A stretch of DNA of 64,000 nucleotides. Origin: Octopus bimaculoides (Eukaryota). The translations under genes were made by a program, and so were the position numbers. The notes under the pieces are model-generated. The model was not told where the DNA came from. It saw nothing but the letters and a program-made list of their open reading frames with translations, and did not search any database. How positions within the stretch are numbered: position 1 is the first letter of the stretch; each line of letters begins with the position of its first letter. The stretch is taken from positions 12,185,950-12,249,949 of the forward strand of contig NC_068998.1 of NCBI RefSeq assembly GCF_001194135.2, in the 5' to 3' direction. Positions 15,619 to 30,269 of this stretch are shown piece by piece.

Positions 15619-21282
<5,664 letters not shown>

Positions 21283-23600
21283 TAGTGATGACCTGAAGTT
21301 ATTTATGGTTTAAAATAAAAGAAATTGAGCCTCATCTCATGTCTTACAGTTTTTACTTTATTACACAAAACCAGTGATTTCAGTGTTATTTAATATACAT
21401 AGTAAGTGTTAAAATAGAGTTTCTGACAAAATATTTCGTTTCATTTCCATGTTTCAGTTGAAATTCTGCTATGGTCAACGTTGCCTTTTCATATTCAGGA
21501 TCTATAAAACATGGGCTAGTATGTACTCTTCCCAGCAAAAGTATGGCATTTTGCTAATGTTAGAAATTGGTAAACAATAGAATTAGCAATTCTTTTTCCT
21601 AATATTTCATGACTAAAACCGTTTTAAATTTGATTGCAGAGTCTAGTGTATTGCTTATTAACTTTTTCAATGTGGAATTAAATTTCATGGTTATTCCAGC
21701 AACGATCTTAAATATCAACCAAAGAATAGAATTGGCATTTTCTGCAAGTGATATTGCCTTAATAAATTTGTTATAAATTGTTTCATATATGCCATTCCTC
21801 AACAAAAGGTAGATTGGTAATGAAATTTTGAGCAGATATATCTGATTTCCATAGCAAAAGAGATAACTAATTTCTGCAGTTTGTTGATTGGTCTTGGCTA
21901 TTTCTGACAAACTTGTGCATGAATCATAACATTGTTGGTGTTTATAGAACATTACTATACTATCAGAAATGTAATACAAGAGAGTGGTAATAAGGAAACG
22001 AGCCAGTGTGTGTTGGGGTTGGATAATAAAGATTGTATTTGAATGTATCTTTGTGTGTGCACATTCTCATAGAAATATATATTGGTGAATTTCTAAGTAA
22101 GGAGGAGGTGTATATTTCTGCGGGCTTGGTCATGCTGAGAGTTTGTAGAAATAAAATTTCTCTTCTTGATTGTCTAAAGGAGGAAAGGCACATTGTAAAA
22201 TGCACTGGAATAAATGAGATGATCATATGGCTTCAGCACCGGATTATATACAGCTGGTTTTGGCATAAATAAGAGTTTTTTTTTTAATTGAGGCAGCGTT
22301 TTTCTGTTGAAATACACTGACTTTAACTCTTTCATTACCGTATTTATTTTGAGATGCTCTGTTTCTTTCAATTACTTTCAATATAACAAAAAATTTAGTA
22401 AACTAACTTAGCTATCATTAAGCTGGTGTTAGGAACATAAATAGTGACTAAGGTTTGGTGGAAGATTTTAATTCAAAGCTTATGTCAACAAGACATTTGT
22501 ACTACACAGCCAGTTTCAGCTGGGTTGGTATCAAAAGGGTTAACTTAATTTTAAATTGTGAAAATAATGTACAATTTAGTAAAATTACTTTATTATTAAG
22601 CTGATATTAGGAACTTCAATAGGTTTTAATTAAAATCACTTTAAAACAGGAAGTTAATATTGAATGAGGAACAATTTAACATCAAGAAAGTTAATGTTGC
22701 AAGTTCTTTTGACAGCTCAATAGAAACAACTGGAAATCAATACTGGATTGTCAATGAAGCCATTTCCACTTTATTGATGAGTTTGTTCATTAACATTCAG
22801 CTTGGTGAATGAAGTTATAGGCTCCTTAGTTTAACCCCAGGTCAAACCTGATTAGAGGCATTTCGATCCTAACTGCCTCATCTAGGGAACTCCAGATCAG
22901 TGTGGCTATTTTTTAGAGGGTAATCATAGTGTGATTTGGCTGCTATTTCTAGCAGGTTGTACCAAGTAGATACTCTCAATTACCAATGAATTTAACATCT
23001 CAGGTCCGAATATTTCTTTTCCAGCACCTTTCTAACATTACTATTAGCAGCAATCTTAGCTGGCTTCAGTTACTCATTTTATGGCTGGCTAATGATGGTG
23101 TTAATCACTCTTTGTCTAAAGTAGGCATGGGTGAACTTACTTGCATTGGGCCAGGCCATAAGAGATTACTCATAAAGCTCTGTCCACACCACTAACAGGA
23201 TAATACTGTAGGGAGTACAAGGGGGTGAGTTGGTTGAATTGTTCATATGCTGGGTAAAATGCTTCATGGTAATTCGTCTGAAGTATCAGTTGAGTTGATT
23301 TTTTTTTTTTCTAACCCCTTCAGGATGTTGCCCCTGCATAGCTGTAGCCCAATGACTGGATCATCGTCATCATTTAATGTCTGTTTTCCATGCTGGCATG
23401 GGTTGGAGGGTTTGAAAAGAGCTGTCTGGACTCCAATTGTCTATTTTGATATGGTTTCTATGGCTTGATATCTTTCTGTTGTGGAGGACACCCCCGAGTG
23501 AGAGAAGTGGGCTATTGCACCACAATTAAATAGTGGACAGGCACAAGTGGTGTCAAACTGCGAGGTACGCCATTTGGGCTAGTCATACAGACAATGAAGT

Positions 23601-24870: not shown

Positions 24871-27800
24871 TCATCTAAAACATTCATTATTCAACGTTAA
24901 TATCAGCCATTTATGAAAAGAGAAAGGGAATACAAAAACCAAATGAGAATTATTGTGAATGCGGTTCACACAAGAAATGCAAGATTCAATCTATTAATAT
25001 TCTAATCAGTTTGTTTCCATGCTGTAAAACCATTGCTAAAACTAGTTATAAATAGACATGATGACACACCACTCTTGATAGCAAGTTACTCATGCTGCAC
25101 CTCCAGCAGTCAAAAGAAATCAGGTTTTTTTTTTTTTTGTCTGAGATGTTGTATATGTGTATGTGAGACAAGGTGTGTGGCCTAGGTGTTGCATTCATCA
25201 TTGCAAGATCATGGTTTCAATTCCCAGCCTGGCAGTGCACTGTGTTGTTGAGCGAAACACTTCATTTCATGTTGCTCCAGTTCACCCAGTTGTGAATGGG
25301 TAACCCTGTAATGGATTAGAATTCCCTTTAAGGGGAATGTTGACCTGCCTACCTAGTGAGCAGGTTGGTATTATGGGAAAATAAAACAATTCATTTCTAC
25401 AGCTAAGTGAAATGGAGCTACATGAAATAAAGTGTCTTGCTCAAGAACACAACACACAGCCTGGCCCAGGAATCGAACTCACCACCTCATGATTGTGATC
25501 CCAACACTCTAACAATGTGCCTTCACACACACATAAAATAATTGATTAAAAGTATTTTTGTATGGATAAAAGCAATAAACATTAATTGAATTAAAGACTT
25601 GGTATATATGTAGAGTCTGATATTTAAAATGATTTACTTTTGTTGACAGCAATCTTAAAGTTTCTTAAACCATATATCAGTGAAACTTCAAATTCTCTAT
25701 CAACACACTTATAGATATGTATATGTATATATGTGTGTTTGGAGACACATGATAAAATATACAATAATCCATTACAATATAATATACAATAATCCATTAC
25801 AATATAATATACAATAATTCATGTTGGTGAAAATGAATTCTAAACAGTTAAAAAATATATATATAAAATAATTACCTCTGTAAAGTTGTTGGGGCAGACT
25901 GAGATGTATTTCCATGGGCCTTGTTGAGACGCTGTCGGCGCTTTTGATGTGCAAGTGACAAAGAGGCACTTCTTATATTTATTGGAGTATCGCGATTATT
26001 TGACAATTGACGAAGACTAAGGGAAGCTTGCCGAATTGAAGTGTACTGAGTTAGCTCAGATCTGCAATGTAATGTTTGTGTGATAAGTAAAACTAATGGA
26101 GTTTTAAGGATGTAGGATTTAGACCAGTGGCTAAACAGACAGCTAATAGGTTAAAGGTAGAGAGATGTACTCTATATATGTCATTAGGACTGGCACAAAC
26201 TATGTGCCATCTGGTTTAACACTGAAAATGTAAATAGTAGGTCGACACTAATTTAACCTCTTAACATACACATTTGTCTTCAATTTCTATGCAAAAAATA
26301 TTTTTTATTTATTCATTTTGAATCTGTGTATAAGGAAGAATAAGTACACAAATTTTTTTGGATCAGTTATGATTTATTCCGAAGTTACTAATAGAAATGA
26401 TGGTTAGTGGTAGAAGACAGGAATAACATCACAGATGAAGTATTTCAGGTTAGAAATAAGTGACAGATACCCCAGAGTATAGTGAATGTATATTTTCATT
26501 TAAATATATATTTACTAGATATGTCTGAATGAAAATATACGAGATAATATGTTAAGAGGTTAATGCTGATTATGATACCAGAATTGCAGGTGCTAGCTCC
26601 AACATATTCGATCCACAGCAAAGAATATGTGTAAAAAACAACTTACTATCTTCAATTCAGTTTTTGTGCCTATCCTCACCTATAGTCAAGAATGTTGGGT
26701 AACAACTGAAATATTGTTCCTCTGAAAGGTCTCTGAAGTGACGTTACCAGACAGGATGAGTAGCTCAGAGATCAGGGAGGCTCTCCAGCTTGAGTTGCTA
26801 CTTCTCTGCTCTGAGAAGTCACAGCTCTGACACTACAGACATTTTATTAGAATGTCACAGGAAAGAACTGCTAGACAAATTCTTTGAGCTGAGCTAACCA
26901 GCAAGATTCCTCGAGGTGGACCAAGAATGAGATGGTTAGATAATATTCATCGTCTCTGTTGGATATACTTGGGAATTCAGTTGGACAGTATAATGATGGC
27001 TGCTTCTGATAAAACCCCACGAAAGGTATGCCTTAGGGCTACCTAGATGAACCTCCCAGGAATAGAAAGTGGAGAAGATGGATGGATGGTTGGAAAAATA
27101 TTAGTGGATTGAATAGCTTTGTAAATAAAAAGAGAAGCATACATTGCCATGTATTTTATACAAGATCTTTTTTATGACAACTGTTTTATCAGACAGTTGA
27201 ACCAGTACATGAGTAATATGGCGATGAGCAAAGAGTCTTGTCCCACCTCAAAATGCAATAACTGTGATTGGGTGTTAAACTATGAGACAAATAGCTCAAT
27301 ATGGATCATTGTTTCTAAAAATCAAAAAAAATTAACTTACTCTGGTGTCTGACAAATTCTTTTCTCTCTGGAAAGAAGAAAAAAACAAAACATTTTAGAT
27401 AACTGCTACTATATATTTTTGTATTTATTTGCAACTTCATAAAAATATACTGAATAAACCATTTGAGATTTTAAAGTGAGAGAATGAGAGATCAGGACTG
27501 ATTATTTCTCCCCTAATATAAATTAAATTAGTGAAATTGATTCTCAATTTTATCAAAATTACCTCTCATTCCTAGCACCTCTAGGCTATTGTTTATTTTC
27601 TCCTATTTAATGGTCATCTCCTCAGATAATGTTGGGCTTTGGTGCTATTTTATCTAAAATGCCTTTAACAATTGACCAGGAAGCAGTGATTAAACACTAT
27701 ACTTTAGTGAGTAAAATTTTGTTGCAGTATATTTTCTTATTTATAGGCATAATTTTAAAGATACACGTTGTGGCTCTTGAACATAAAACAAAAATCATAT

Positions 27801-28104
27801 ATGGCTCATCATATGAAATTTGGTCATATAATAAGACACGGAAAAACAATCAAATATATAATGACTGTCATCAACATCATATCATTTTCACATCCACTTT
27901 TCCATGCTTGCATGAGTCATATGGAATATTACAAGCAGATTCCCTTTCTGTTGCCAGCATTGCAAAGATGTTTTCCCATGGTTAGACATGTTTACACCGA
28001 AGATTAGAACTGAATGGCATAGCTTGCACATTAATTTCATGAGCAAGCAGTTCTGTTGATCGTATCAGCTGGGACCCTCATCGTCATAACAGATGGAGTG
28101 CTCC

Positions 28105-28171
<67 letters not shown>

Positions 28172-28704
28172 AAACTTCTTTCAGTTTCTGTCCAACAAAT
28201 CCACTCATAAAGCTTTGGTCAGCTTGGGATTATAGCAGAAGACACTAGCTCTGGGGGCCATGCAGTGGGATTGAAACAAAAACCACATGGCTGGGAAGCA
28301 AACTTCTCACTACACAGAAATGCCTGCACCCATGTGTTATCTAAAATGGGTTGTGAACTATTAGGGCAGGTATATTACCTCTGCTATATGGTCCACATCA
28401 CAAGTGGCTGGAAATAGATTTTAATTTCTGTAATAGAATCAATACTAGACTAGAAGATTCAGAAATGCTGAAACATACTCACATGCCAACTCTACCACAA
28501 CACATCATGCAGCTGAGAAAGAGAACAACCAAAAGCAATACAGCAGCTGGTATGATGACAAACGTCACAAAATCAGGAAATATGTCATGGCAGCGTTCAC
28601 TGAGACATTTGGGAGGATCAAAATCATCGACGATAGGAAGCACATTATCCAAGAGGATCATTGTTTCACATCAGAGTCACGTCCAATTAAAAGAAAAAGG
28701 GAAT
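24871..28704 (-). CDS. SGCE: Alpha/epsilon-sarcoglycan-like locus, 3' part; open frame join(28661-28483, 27367-27341, 26061-25876, tentative 24874-24871); upstream frame disrupted
   Basis: The joined exons read MILLDNVLPIVDDFDPPKCLSERCHDIFPDFVTFVIIPAAVLLLVVLFLSCMMCCGRVGI-EKRICQTPE-SELTQYTSIRQASLSLRQLSNNRDTP... This matches remembered human SGCE [80 protein letters not shown], with both introns in phase 2. Two in-frame TGA codons lie 5' of Met 28661, so it may be a pseudogene or a truncated gene. Confidence 0.8.
25876..26061 (-). CDS. SGCE: Sarcoglycan cytoplasmic-domain exon
   Basis: ttgcag|A TCT GAG CTA ACT CAG TAC..CAG AG|gtaatt, 186 nt, open. ELTQYTSIRQASLSLRQLSNNR matches the conserved sarcoglycan cytoplasmic motif. 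Confidence 0.85.
26540..26960 (+). mobile_element. Degenerate RTE LINE RT C-terminal fragment in a sarcoglycan intron
   Basis: Remnants IFNSVFVPILTYSQECWVTT and RHFIRMSQERTARQIL..SKIPRGGPRMRWLDNI, resembling the RTE WFGHV.RM..R.RGRPR.RW.D motif. Confidence 0.7.
27341..27367 (-). CDS. SGCE: Sarcoglycan 27-nt microexon (I)EKRICQTP(E)
   Basis: tttcttctttccag|AGAGAAAAGAATTTGTCAGACACCAGA|gtaagt, phase 2/2. Confidence 0.85.
28483..28704 (-). CDS. SGCE: Sarcoglycan transmembrane exon (5' 43 nt contain two in-frame TGA)
   Basis: Acceptor ctcttcag| at 28705 and donor AT|gtgagt at 28482. Hydrophobic TM helix followed by CMMCCGR. Confidence 0.8.
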
Positions 28705-30269
28705 CTGAAGAGAAAGAAAGAGAAAAACAGCATAAATTGTCAGAGTGCTTTGATTTTTAATACTCATTTTATACGATCTATCTTTTATTTTTTACTGGGA
28801 CACCATCTTGATGGCTTTATTTGAACAAATCAACCCAGGTACTTACTTTTTTAAAGCCTGAGACTTATTGTATCAGTCACCTTTGTTGAGATTGGATACG
28901 TTAGACCAATGAAGCATGGCAAAATAGATTTTGTTTCCTGGAGCCTAATGGCATCTATAAATAAGAGAACCTTTGCTGTTTTCATCAGTGAGGTGGGAAT
29001 CTTCAGAGAAAGAGAGGAGAGTGGTTTAACAAGTAGCTTTGATGCACTACTTGTGTTCCTATTTGCCGCGCTCGTATAAACAGAAAGAATGAGAAACTGC
29101 AAGAAGTCATGTAATATATTTCTGTCAAGCACACATCAAATTTCTACTGATCTGAGAATCAAATATGTATACTTTCTTCAGAAAGTTATCATCATGATTT
29201 AACCAACCAGTTGCTGTACAAATTCACTGACTGGCTGAATAAAGCTTAACAGTTAATTACAACTTTTCTTGTATTTCTTTCCACTGTTCTAAACACAACT
29301 AATTGGAATCAATAACTTGTAATTATACCAGGGCCAGAGACATGCTAACCAGCTCATTAAAAACTCTATATTAGCCCTGAACATGCAAGCCTATGATTAA
29401 AAGTACCCCAGCTTCAACTCTCATGCTTTTTGTAGGTTTAGAACATTATCCAAAATCATCATCATTTAACATCCATTTTCCATACTGGCATGGATTGGAT
29501 GGGTTGACAGGAGATGGTAAGTTAGAGAGTTGCCCCAGACTCCAATTGTCCGTTTTTGCATAGTTTCTATAGCTGGATGCCCTTCCTAATGCCAACCACT
29601 TTACAGAATGAACTGGATGTTTTTTATGTGACACCAGCATGTATCTTTCCTATTCTAAAACTGTGTGATATGAGGGAGATATGGATGCTATACCTCATAG
29701 TTCTTTCATTATATTTATACATTTTATTCCTATCTTATTCGTCTTCCTTCATATAGCTCAACTACGCCTCAATCATATCTGTGAAGCTAAAACTCTGACC
29801 TAACCACAACTTTGAAAAATATTCCCGTCTGTTTCTGTCAAACATAAATGATTACATATCTCTTTATCATATATTAGGTTACCTCTCAATGGCTCAGTTC
29901 ACGTGGTCATATGAAAGTACTATGGGAGTTCTGATAAAGCTTTAAAAATAATTACCAACAATAGGTATGGAGGTACATTAACTGCCAACTTGCCCCTGTT
30001 CCCGGGTAGAAATTAAAATGAGAGGAGATAACTCTTTCAGTTGATAACAACACAATTGGAACCCCCAGATGGTGGCCAACCCAACTGATATCACATGGTG
30101 AGCCAATAAAAAATCTTCTATATGCCCACTCGACCCATTAGTATTACCAATCAAACCTCTGAAATTTTCAAAGAAAAGACAAAGGCATGTTTATTAAGCA
30201 CATCTATGTAAATTGATTCTCAATTTCTTGAAATTATCTCCCCTCCCTTTGAGTTTTTTTTTTTTCTAC

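Follow-up and report, generated by a model that had tools for sequence, protein, structure and literature searches.

The 64,000-nucleotide stretch of Octopus bimaculoides DNA analysed here (the window) carries on its minus strand an ORF of 131 codons that starts at ATG 28661 (A at -3) and, by direct reading of the sequence, has canonical, intact splice sites. The first coding exon (28483 to 28661, donor AT/gtgagt) contains the start codon and encodes an acidic stub, the transmembrane (TM) helix and a CMMCC-GRVG juxtamembrane stretch. It is followed by a 27-nt microexon (27341 to 27367, flanks cag/../gtaagt) for (I)EKRICQTP(E), which is the juxtamembrane EKR..TPE motif conserved in the alpha/epsilon-sarcoglycans, and by a third coding exon (25876 to 26061, flanks cag/../gtaatt) for a cytoplasmic helix and a disordered tail with the C-terminal SAPTTLQR. 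The terminal coding exon (24871 to 24874, tag/A+TGA) contributes the single nucleotide that finishes Arg131 and then TGA, with the 3'UTR running on downstream. The original prediction, made from the sequence alone, had described about 131 codons from Met 28661 in three exons with intact splice sites; the frame and the splice sites stand, and the coding exons number four. O. sinensis and O. vulgaris share the arrangement of one nucleotide plus TGA; Argonauta has S-R added ahead of the stop codon. The start Met and exon plan of Argonauta are those of Octopus, the exon plan of the oyster is similar, the cuttlefish carries the same 27-nt microexon, and a weak tblastn match suggests a small exon at the equivalent position in the oyster. 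Upstream lies a CCDC142/Cnd3-type gene in divergent orientation, and interpolation puts its coding start at a distance of roughly 4 kb.

At 100% identity the protein matches the NCBI model 'alpha-sarcoglycan-like [Octopus vulgaris]' (UniRef n=3 Octopus), and its Argonauta hians orthologue has 132 aa and 82% identity. The predicted extracellular stub is acidic, 27 residues long, and contains two Cys (C19 and C24). AF2 placed the TM helix at residues 28-56 (nt 28580-28494; pLDDT block means of 86 and 93 for residues 31-50) and a cytoplasmic helix with RxxS motifs at residues 69-92 (SELTQYTSIRQASLSLRQLSNNR; block means of 76 and 80 for residues 71-90), and predicted disorder outside these two helices. 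The stub has a net charge of -4, and GRVGIEKR, directly after the helix, of +2; together with the AF2 helix, these flanking charges predict an N-out/C-in topology.

A Pfam scan of the 131-aa protein gave no match at E<=1. Residues 251-324 of alpha-sarcoglycan in PDB 9c3c_a align to it (E=1.4e-5), and its TM-proximal loop, TM helix, CC-(R)-G-x-EKR..TPE motif and proximal cytoplasmic helix, with a QL..Y/H..I...LR.(L/M)S motif, are homologous to those of vertebrate SGCA/SGCE, the type I subunits of the dystrophin-glycoprotein complex. To our knowledge, the function of the vertebrate alpha/epsilon-sarcoglycan tail is still undefined. Unlike SGCA/SGCE, the octopus protein has no signal peptide, no cadherin-like domain (PF05510) and no SEA-like domain with its F.IDWC motif (PF20989 region), the ORF beginning 27 residues ahead of the TM helix. 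In SGCA, the cadherin-like and SEA-like domains are the regions least tolerant of mutation, the numbering of SGCA reaches residue 387 (131 aa in the octopus protein), and the CDHL-SEA architecture of alpha-sarcoglycan is said to resemble dystroglycan (bioRxiv 10.64898/2026.07.22.740214). By analogy only, with no claim of homology, the octopus protein recalls beta-dystroglycan, a single-pass subunit of the same complex with a short ectodomain, in which intracellular docking is done by the cytoplasmic tail. Beta-dystroglycan is the cleavage product of a precursor and remains bound to alpha-dystroglycan, whereas the octopus gene itself lacks an ectodomain.

Ahead of ATG 28661, the first coding exon carries a 43-nt leader (28662 to 28704, minus strand), read as 5'UTR, which follows the acceptor AG at 28706-28705; the predicted acceptor at 28704 reads ...ctcttcag/ATTCCC. 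In the coding frame the leader reads FPFSFNWT-stop-L-stop-CET, as originally reported, with both in-frame stops being TGA (28679 and 28673), and the other two frames are closed too (IPFFF-stop; ...DVKQ-stop). With no AG dinucleotide anywhere in the leader, the stops cannot be skipped by way of another acceptor, again as reported. Assembly indels had been considered as the cause of the closed leader, but the independently assembled genomes of O. sinensis and O. vulgaris have it closed as well, and so does Argonauta hians. Its length is 42, 43 or 44 nt across the three Octopus species (-1/+1 nt indels), so no conserved upstream frame is possible, and the Argonauta sequence upstream of the Met is unrelated to the Octopus leader and unalignable with it. 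We scored the three leader frames (ungapped BLOSUM62) against the DWC-to-TM stretch of 18 alpha/epsilon-sarcoglycan homologues, with the first W[CS] beyond residue 150 as anchor. The best score was 23, against 21.1 +/- 3.2 for shuffles, of which 133 in 500 scored as high or higher. The likeness to FRVDWCNVTL and FYIDWCKISL on which the original prediction had drawn is thus at chance level. Together with the congener indels and the unalignable Argonauta sequence, this argues against its view of the 43 nt as lesioned ectodomain rather than UTR, as does the chiton-like genomic contig, in which the DWC motif lies in the exon preceding that of the linker and TM helix (exon assignment from the chiton protein model). 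On these comparisons, ATG 28661 is the start of the ORF, preceded by 43 nt of non-coding leader. By direct reading, the leader also contains an out-of-frame ATG-TGA start-stop minimal uORF (28666 to 28671, minus strand), 10 nt upstream of the main ATG, in weak context (T at -3) and identical in O. sinensis and O. vulgaris, which may be a candidate for a regulatory role.

We searched the 64-kb window by tblastn with 28 alpha/epsilon-sarcoglycan homologue sequences, full-length and partial, and found no ectodomain exon; nor did tblastn reveal one in the orthologous loci of O. sinensis, O. vulgaris, Argonauta, oyster, limpet and mussel, which were taken with 10 kb of sequence ahead of the called start of the gene. 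At the 3' end, neither the window nor the octopod loci yielded a PPxY exon downstream; the Octopus and Argonauta proteins terminate at or shortly past TLQR, and the cuttlefish protein (P0003) retains PPPPY.

A HMMER profile search of 1.84e9 representatives gave 50 matches, and exhaustive profile searching about 20 short homologues (130-280 aa) in bivalves, gastropods and cephalopods that begin shortly before the TM helix; in most of the short proteins the profile alignment begins at residue 3-18. Ranking next after a full-length chiton protein, short matches came from Sinanodonta, Solemya, Mytilus (several species), Dreissena, Crassostrea and Tegillarca, and from Batillaria, Gigantopelta, Patella, Haliotis and Plakobranchus. 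Examples are Crassostrea virginica LOC111133945 (171 aa), Mytilus galloprovincialis LOC143072861 (174 aa), Patella vulgata LOC126814791 (198 aa) and Haliotis rubra LOC124284808; for the abalone and other short homologues the evidence here consists of protein models only. As informal marks of the short family we took an ORF start at most some 30 residues ahead of the TM helix with in-frame upstream stop(s), and a stub PP-x(1,3)-C-x(2,5)-[DE/G]-R-C combined with a cytoplasmic SAP.TLQR. Such a start was seen in Octopus, Argonauta, oyster, limpet and spliced transcripts, with in-frame stops upstream of the equivalent Met in oyster and limpet genomic DNA and in three spliced transcript contigs; the mussel has no stop within its 7-nt leader. 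The octopus stub DPPKCLSERC and tail SAPTTLQR fit the motif. Like the octopus ORF, those of the bivalve and gastropod proteins start 10-30 residues ahead of the TM helix, and the proteins share with it the stub motif PP..C..(D/E)RC.D.F.(D/E)F, a conserved TM Pro, Y.SIRRAS..LR..S..RDTP and SAP.TLQR, the exon plan resembling that of the octopus where checked. The stub Cys pair, C..(D/E)RC, is present in all aligned short proteins except that of Haliotis, which lacks both Cys, and is missing in every full-length protein aligned. Across 14 short-family members, conservation is at least 90% at P16, P17, C19, R23 and C24 and complete at S124, P126, T128, L129 and Q130. Most of the bivalve and gastropod proteins have one or two C-terminal PPxY and a longer tail, whereas the octopod proteins end directly after SAPTTLQR. 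In the bivalve and gastropod proteins the juxtamembrane segment is rich in Lys/Arg, and EKR..TPE, retained by octopods, has been lost. A retained ectodomain-less protein of about 130 aa, one of the two readings first offered, is strongly supported by this family, by the identity in three Octopus species and by the conservation in Argonauta. To call it notable for cephalopod muscle was too narrow, since oyster, mussel, limpet, abalone and others carry the short form.

The top profile match was the full-length epsilon-sarcoglycan-like protein of the chiton Liolophura sinensis (XP_064602747.1, 413 aa; 1e-29, residues 262-387), the nearest full-length relative. Epsilon-sarcoglycan-like proteins of echinoderms, amphioxus and a hemichordate were matched as well, the deuterostome ones at ~1e-8 to 1e-10. 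The chiton and octopod proteins share DD(F/Y)DPP, CCGR.G.EKR..TPE, Y.SIR.AS.SLRQLS.NR and SAP.TLQR; unlike the octopus protein, that of the chiton has a full ectodomain with PF05510 and a PPPY tail, and lacks the stub Cys pair. It scored 132 bits against the mini proteins, compared with at most 72 bits for every other full-length protein. That the sole ectodomain-bearing mollusc match is also the nearest relative of the minis is as orthology predicts. In an NJ tree from a short alignment, the octopod proteins cluster with the chiton (94% bootstrap) and not with the bivalve and gastropod short forms, so independent truncations are possible. The gene model of the chiton extends over 184 kb, has a GPCR gene nested within it and could be a chimeric prediction, in which case the story of an ancestral full-length gene that was later truncated would be weakened.

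The mini gene might instead be an ancient partial-duplicate paralogue, standing beside a canonical full-length copy elsewhere in the octopus genome and providing an accessory or regulatory, possibly dominant-negative-like, subunit instead of the only one of alpha/epsilon type. Two full-length transcripts exist (P0029 and P0088), and searches for ectodomain homologues had low recall, a profile of 14 ectodomain sequences recovering 2 of its own 14 members, so that these searches do not establish the absence of a full-length copy. Nevertheless, we think such a paralogue unlikely: an exhaustive C-terminal profile search gave short forms only for every named bivalve, gastropod and cephalopod, and the one mollusc protein with an ectodomain is the chiton protein closest to the minis.

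Compared with O. sinensis or O. vulgaris, the coding sequence in the window shows 9 synonymous differences and no non-synonymous one (S=90, N=303 sites), an outcome with a neutral probability of ~0.23^9, roughly 2e-6 by our own arithmetic. The CDS is 97.7% identical between Octopus species (384/393 nt), and the flanking introns about 88-92%. The original prediction had proposed a dN/dS comparison with other cephalopods; against Argonauta omega was ~0.03 (dN=0.095; dS>2.7, saturated), far from 1. Judged by these substitution patterns, the ORF is under strong purifying selection. The closed leader frames and the lack of recognisable upstream ectodomain exons would fit a once full-length SGCA/E gene, recently lost, whose 5' part is decaying and whose 3' exons are open by chance or recency. 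However, the stops are confined to the non-homologous leader, the start Met and exon plan are kept in Argonauta and a similar plan is found in the oyster, and some of the short homologues spread across three mollusc classes exist as spliced mRNAs. With none of the 9 substitutions non-synonymous and a whole family of short proteins, the recent loss or plain pseudogene first envisaged is refuted, and we regard it as very improbable. Scarcely credible, finally, is a full-length protein still made from diverged, unseen ectodomain exons, the leader stops being removed by assembly error, A-to-I editing or selenocysteine decoding: both stops are TGA, convertible to TGG by A-to-I editing, coleoids edit mRNA heavily, and acceptor 28704 lies 25 codons before DDFDPP where its chiton equivalent would lie 27 codons before DDYDPP (protein model and L006 exon end), but three independent Octopus assemblies are closed with leaders of differing length, Argonauta, oyster and limpet have stops too, no conserved frame runs through the TGA codons, an Rfam scan of the window gave no family, SECIS included, at gathering score, and no ectodomain similarity was found across the 64 kb.

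We consider it highly likely, from the sequence evidence, that the locus is a functional minus-strand gene, the octopod member of an old ectodomain-less alpha/epsilon-sarcoglycan family of bivalves, gastropods and cephalopods. The chiton model suggests a full-length ancestral gene, which would have lost the exons for the signal peptide and for the ectodomain with its cadherin-like and SEA-like parts, probably before bivalves, gastropods and cephalopods diverged, and the acceptor before the stub and TM exon would now splice to 5'UTR sequence. Without a signal peptide, the single hydrophobic helix would act as a reverse signal-anchor, with the N-terminus predicted outside and the C-terminus inside, as in the full-length protein. 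The mini protein would then be limited to what the subunit does within the membrane and in the cytoplasm, by means of the juxtamembrane Cys cluster, the amphipathic RxxS-rich helix and the SAPxTLQR motif, and would probably still act beside other sarcoglycans and dystroglycan. Octopods would additionally have lost the C-terminal PPxY that the cuttlefish, the chiton and several bivalve and gastropod homologues retain.

More tentatively, the short protein could be the only alpha/epsilon-type sarcoglycan in bivalves, gastropods and cephalopods, the ectodomain having been discarded once in their common ancestor and the TM and proximal tail strongly constrained thereafter. If this is true, the TM segment and tail would carry an autonomous, essential function, and these molluscs would assemble the sarcoglycan/dystroglycan complex without an alpha/epsilon ectodomain.

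On the minus strand of the window, which is AT-rich eukaryotic DNA with ~90% nucleotide identity to chromosomes of Octopus sinensis (GCA_006345805.1) and O. vulgaris (GCA_951406725.2), direct reading of the sequence gave what the original prediction had described: a splice acceptor (...ctcttcag) at 28704, a stop-bearing leader and, from ATG 28661, which has an A at -3, an open reading frame of 131 codons. Its predicted product, here called the mini-protein, corresponds to the transmembrane (TM) and cytoplasmic parts of an alpha/epsilon-sarcoglycan without the ectodomain. The proposed open frame and intact splice sites were retained, with every intron GT-AG, but the three proposed exons became four coding exons. 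Exon 1 (28661-28483) encodes the stub (~27 residues before the TM helix), the helix and the juxtamembrane stretch; exon 2 (27367-27341) is a 27-nt microexon; exon 3 (26061-25876) encodes the cytoplasmic helix and the tail; and exon 4 (24874-24871) supplies 1 nt plus the TGA. The introns measure 1115 (28482-27368), 1279 (27340-26062) and 1001 nt (25875-24875), while those of the O. sinensis locus are far longer (4021, 2274 and 1673 nt), mostly through inserted repeats. Intron 1 carries an (AT)n microsatellite of ~60 nt (28108-28168), and short interspersed repeat copies lie in the window introns at 28343-28119 and 24647-24511. An extra copy, found ~100-450 nt upstream of the TM exon in O. sinensis (L002 9446-9669) and O. 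vulgaris (L003 9481-9694), is absent from the window species.

The upstream neighbour in Octopus is a divergent CCDC142/Cnd3-type gene, whose coding sequence starts ~4 kb away; by interpolation it runs on the plus strand from ~32500 upward, and its 1983-aa model, which joins two unrelated Pfam families, may be a merged model. Downstream, an RPS27 (Ribosomal_S27e) gene at ~16400-21300 (plus strand, interpolated) is convergent with the 3' end of the mini-gene. Synteny was discarded as evidence of orthology, the RPS27 neighbour being common only to Octopus and Argonauta and the limpet and mussel neighbours being different; no neighbouring gene was called within the oyster locus.

No Pfam family matched the mini-protein, neither PF05510 nor PF20989, which are found on full-length relatives, being detected. 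Among the PDB sequences it matched alpha-sarcoglycan (9c3c chain a, residues 251-324; E=1.4e-5); the query had 145 residues, a 14-codon translation of the leader plus the ORF, and the match covered query positions 28-103, that is, protein residues 14-89. An exhaustive HMMER search of 1.84 billion cluster representatives with an Octopus-Argonauta protein profile returned 50 matches at E<=1e-3. The first was a full-length, PF05510-positive 'epsilon-sarcoglycan-like' protein of 413 aa from the chiton Liolophura sinensis (1e-29, residues 262-387), followed by short proteins, mostly of 170-230 aa, in most of which the match begins at residue 3-18. These came from bivalves (Sinanodonta, Solemya, Mytilus species, Dreissena, Crassostrea virginica and Tegillarca) and gastropods (Batillaria, Gigantopelta, Patella, Haliotis and Plakobranchus), nearly all of them labelled 'uncharacterized' or 'hypothetical' in the database. 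The lower ranks (~1e-8 to 1e-4) were occupied by canonical full-length epsilon/alpha-sarcoglycan-like proteins of echinoderms, a hemichordate, amphioxus, a myriapod and vertebrate-like sequences. The gene for the chiton protein (XP_064602747.1) occupies 184 kb for its 413 aa and encloses a 7TM GPCR gene in opposite orientation; either its introns are very long or the model is chimeric.

The alignment of the short proteins holds from their first residues, where they share the motif (D/E)(F/Y).PP..C..(D/E)RC.D.F.(D/E)F, and continues through a conserved Pro in the TM helix, a Cys-rich juxtamembrane stretch and the cytoplasmic motifs Y.SIR(R/Q)AS..LR.(L/M)S..RDTP, an SGS(L/M)(S/T)L stretch and SAP.TLQR. 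The oyster, limpet and mussel genomic loci have an octopus-like architecture. In C. virginica, the leader between acceptor and ATG is ~44 nt long, with TAA and TGA in frame no more than 10 codons upstream of the Met, and the exons encode in turn the stub and TM helix, a probable small exon, the conserved exon and a PPxY exon. The exon plan is similar in Patella caerulea, with a 21-nt leader holding in-frame TAA and TAG, and in Mytilus galloprovincialis, whose leader of 7 nt holds no in-frame stop. Two other Mytilus species have models of 192 aa, with 18-aa N-terminal extensions that are unrelated and hence not conserved coding sequence. In addition, three intron-free transcript contigs (one from a Logan run and two from a JGI metatranscriptome) code for complete members of 223 and 225 aa with in-frame stops in their 5'UTRs, so that stand-alone mRNAs of the short form exist. 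With homologues both in the HMMER results and at genomic loci of bivalves and gastropods, the short form is not specific to cephalopods, and the original stress on cephalopod muscle is too narrow. In the cuttlefish Acanthosepion pharaonis, the protein model P0003 (CAHIKZ030001819.1) has a low-complexity N-terminus of 18 residues, which is probably spurious, and a long C-terminal extension with PPPPY; the stub and TM exon was not found within 24 kb upstream of the microexon in the corresponding locus (L004).

How often the ectodomain was lost can be approached from the same sequences. A pair of Cys residues in the stub occurs in nearly all the short forms, octopods included (Haliotis excepted), and in no full-length protein aligned, a distribution that argues for one single truncation event. 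The HMM of the mini-family scored the chiton protein at 132 bits and every other full-length protein at 72 bits or less, and in a neighbour-joining tree of 90 shared columns the chiton protein clustered with those of octopods (94% bootstrap), and the short forms of bivalves and gastropods made a group of their own (62-72%); given this topology, independent truncations are possible. Whether single or repeated, the truncation is old, being earlier than the Octopus-Argonauta split, and it most likely took place before cephalopods, bivalves and gastropods diverged. The cuttlefish P0003, the chiton protein and several bivalve and gastropod proteins have PPxY motifs beyond SAP.TLQR, where the Octopus and Argonauta proteins end; octopods are the most reduced members of the short family. 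A TPPPY at ~22108 was rejected as a downstream octopus exon for want of an acceptor giving the right frame, and the loci of O. sinensis, O. vulgaris and Argonauta yielded no PPxY exon either.

The original prediction had left the choice between a pseudogene or recent loss and a retained mini-sarcoglycan of ~130 aa, and the dN/dS comparison proposed for it decides for the latter. The 131-aa product is identical to the NCBI/UniRef entry 'alpha-sarcoglycan-like [Octopus vulgaris]' (a UniRef cluster of three Octopus members), and the Argonauta hians orthologue has 132 aa and 82% identity. The coding sequences of O. sinensis, O. vulgaris and Argonauta were rebuilt from their loci and compared with that of the window by Nei-Gojobori counting. 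Relative to each other Octopus species the window showed 9 synonymous changes and not one non-synonymous change (S=90, N=303 sites), and between O. sinensis and O. vulgaris the counts were 4 and 0, respectively; the surrounding introns are just ~88-92% identical among Octopus species. Against Argonauta, dN was 0.095 and dS >2.7, the synonymous sites being saturated, with omega ~0.03. The mini-protein is under strong purifying selection.

The stops before the ATG had been read as lesioned ectodomain. The 43-nt leader (28704-28662) translates in the coding frame as FPFSFNWT-stop-L-stop-CET, the other two frames are closed too, and it contains no AG, so that, as originally claimed, no internal acceptor could skip the stops. 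The suggested likeness is to the DWC motif (F.IDWC), the conserved end of the SEA-like part of the ectodomain. However, when the three frames were scored against the DWC-to-TM stretch of 18 alpha/epsilon-sarcoglycan homologues, with the first W[CS] past residue 150 as anchor, the leader reached 23 versus 21.1 +/- 3.2 for shuffles, with 133 of 500 shuffles equal or better, and its F-rich 'FSFNW' is just what a T-run encodes. Alignment of the four species shows leader lengths of 42 nt for O. sinensis and 44 nt for O. vulgaris, through indels in and after the T-run, while the adjoining downstream coding sequence changes only synonymously; Argonauta has an unrelated, CCA-rich sequence ahead of the Met, with in-frame stops as well. 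Moreover, in a chiton-like contig (L006) the exon coding for FMVDWCRVV terminates at ...GTG AT/gtgagt, and the linker and TM helix come next in the chiton protein model, which places the DWC motif in the exon preceding the stub and TM exon. The leader is UTR, not lesioned ectodomain; stops within the first few dozen bases past an acceptor may simply signal 5'UTR. The octopus acceptor lies 25 codons before DDFDPP and the chiton boundary, taken from the L006 exon end and the protein model, 27 codons before DDYDPP, and 28704 is plausibly the ancestral intron position. That the octopus acceptor and the chiton intron are both in phase 2 is meaningless, since leader length varies among congeners and the oyster, limpet and mussel leaders are in other phases.

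Assembly indels, also considered originally, are ruled out by the closed leader in three independent Octopus assemblies and in Argonauta. Rescue of the two TGA codons by selenocysteine decoding or A-to-I editing (TGA to TGG) was rejected, as the reading frame upstream would have to be conserved, which it is not; nothing in Rfam, SECIS included, reached threshold within the window.

Within this UTR, 10 nt ahead of the main ATG, stands a minimal out-of-frame uORF in weak context (ATG-TGA, 28671-28666, minus strand), with the same sequence in O. sinensis and O. vulgaris; the Argonauta start, too, is preceded at 11 nt by an ATG out of frame. These upstream ATGs may provide translational control via leaky scanning. 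A 26-nt polypyrimidine-AG-ATTCCC stretch is common to the acceptor regions 28995-29016 and 28699-28720, 296 nt apart, which belong to the upstream exon proposed originally (start 29000) and to the TM exon; it scored higher than mononucleotide shuffles, and may reflect either a small duplication or no more than the composition of splice sites.

Searches for an ectodomain near these genes were negative. In the window, tblastn with 28 alpha/epsilon-sarcoglycan homologues (full-length and partial) matched the TM exon and exon 3 only, and the same queries gave nothing convincing in loci L001-L005, L011 and L012, which also cover the 10 kb preceding the called start of the gene. Weak Patella matches 0.8-0.9 kb upstream (E 0.015-0.04) were discarded, having a stop inside and no DWC motif, as was a match to a vertebrate-like alpha-sarcoglycan ectodomain at L004 68625-68482 (E 0.002, 28% over 50 aa), which is downstream on the wrong strand and probably due to chance. 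The exhaustive C-terminal profile search found no canonical full-length form among named octopus, bivalve or gastropod sequences. The chiton ectodomain as lone query recovered chiton sequences only, and a 14-sequence ectodomain profile recovered 4 proteins, with just 2 of its 14 own members, a recall too poor to argue that a full-length octopus paralogue is absent. Two full-length transcripts turned up outside the named sequences; the runs SRR24462578, ERR15003446 and ERR15003424 are unmentioned in the literature searched.

AlphaFold2, run with the family alignment, modelled two helices (mean pLDDT 64), the TM helix at residues 28-56 and another at residues 69-92, the remainder being disordered. 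The pLDDT block means are 86 and 93 within the first (residues 31-50) and 76 and 80 within the second (residues 71-90). The mini-protein probably lacks a signal peptide, and its TM helix would insert as a reverse signal-anchor. As the stub is acidic (net -4) and GRVGIEKR, right after the helix, is basic (net +2), the N-terminus is expected outside and the C-terminus inside, a predicted topology that would match that of the full-length subunit. The Cys pair of the stub might close a small disulfide loop or bond to another molecule, the CMMCC cluster may be palmitoylated, and the repeated RxxS of the cytoplasmic helix (RQAS, RQLS) would be typical of basophilic kinase sites. By homology, the mini-protein may hold the alpha/epsilon place in the sarcoglycan/dystroglycan assembly via its TM and juxtamembrane segments, and may supply a cytoplasmic docking or regulatory surface; this proposal is in keeping with a 2026 preprint (bioRxiv 10.64898/2026.07.22.740214). 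An example peptide for targeted proteomics is ICQTPESELTQYTSIR.

The octopus gene model is already in NCBI; what appears new is the recognition of a conserved ectodomain-less alpha/epsilon-sarcoglycan family of bivalves, gastropods and cephalopods, the literature searched holding no mention of such a sarcoglycan, nor of mollusc sarcoglycans in any detail. The annotation of members mostly labelled 'uncharacterized' is thereby corrected, and conserved candidates for function are named: the Cys pair, the CC cluster, the RxxS helix and SAPxTLQR. In a deep mutational scan of human SGCA, the ectodomain was the part least tolerant of mutation, and the cytoplasmic tail was dispensable for trafficking, its function undefined (bioRxiv 10.64898/2026.07.22.740214). 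The molluscs represent a natural experiment in reverse of that scan, one that points to an autonomous role for the TM and cytoplasmic segment.
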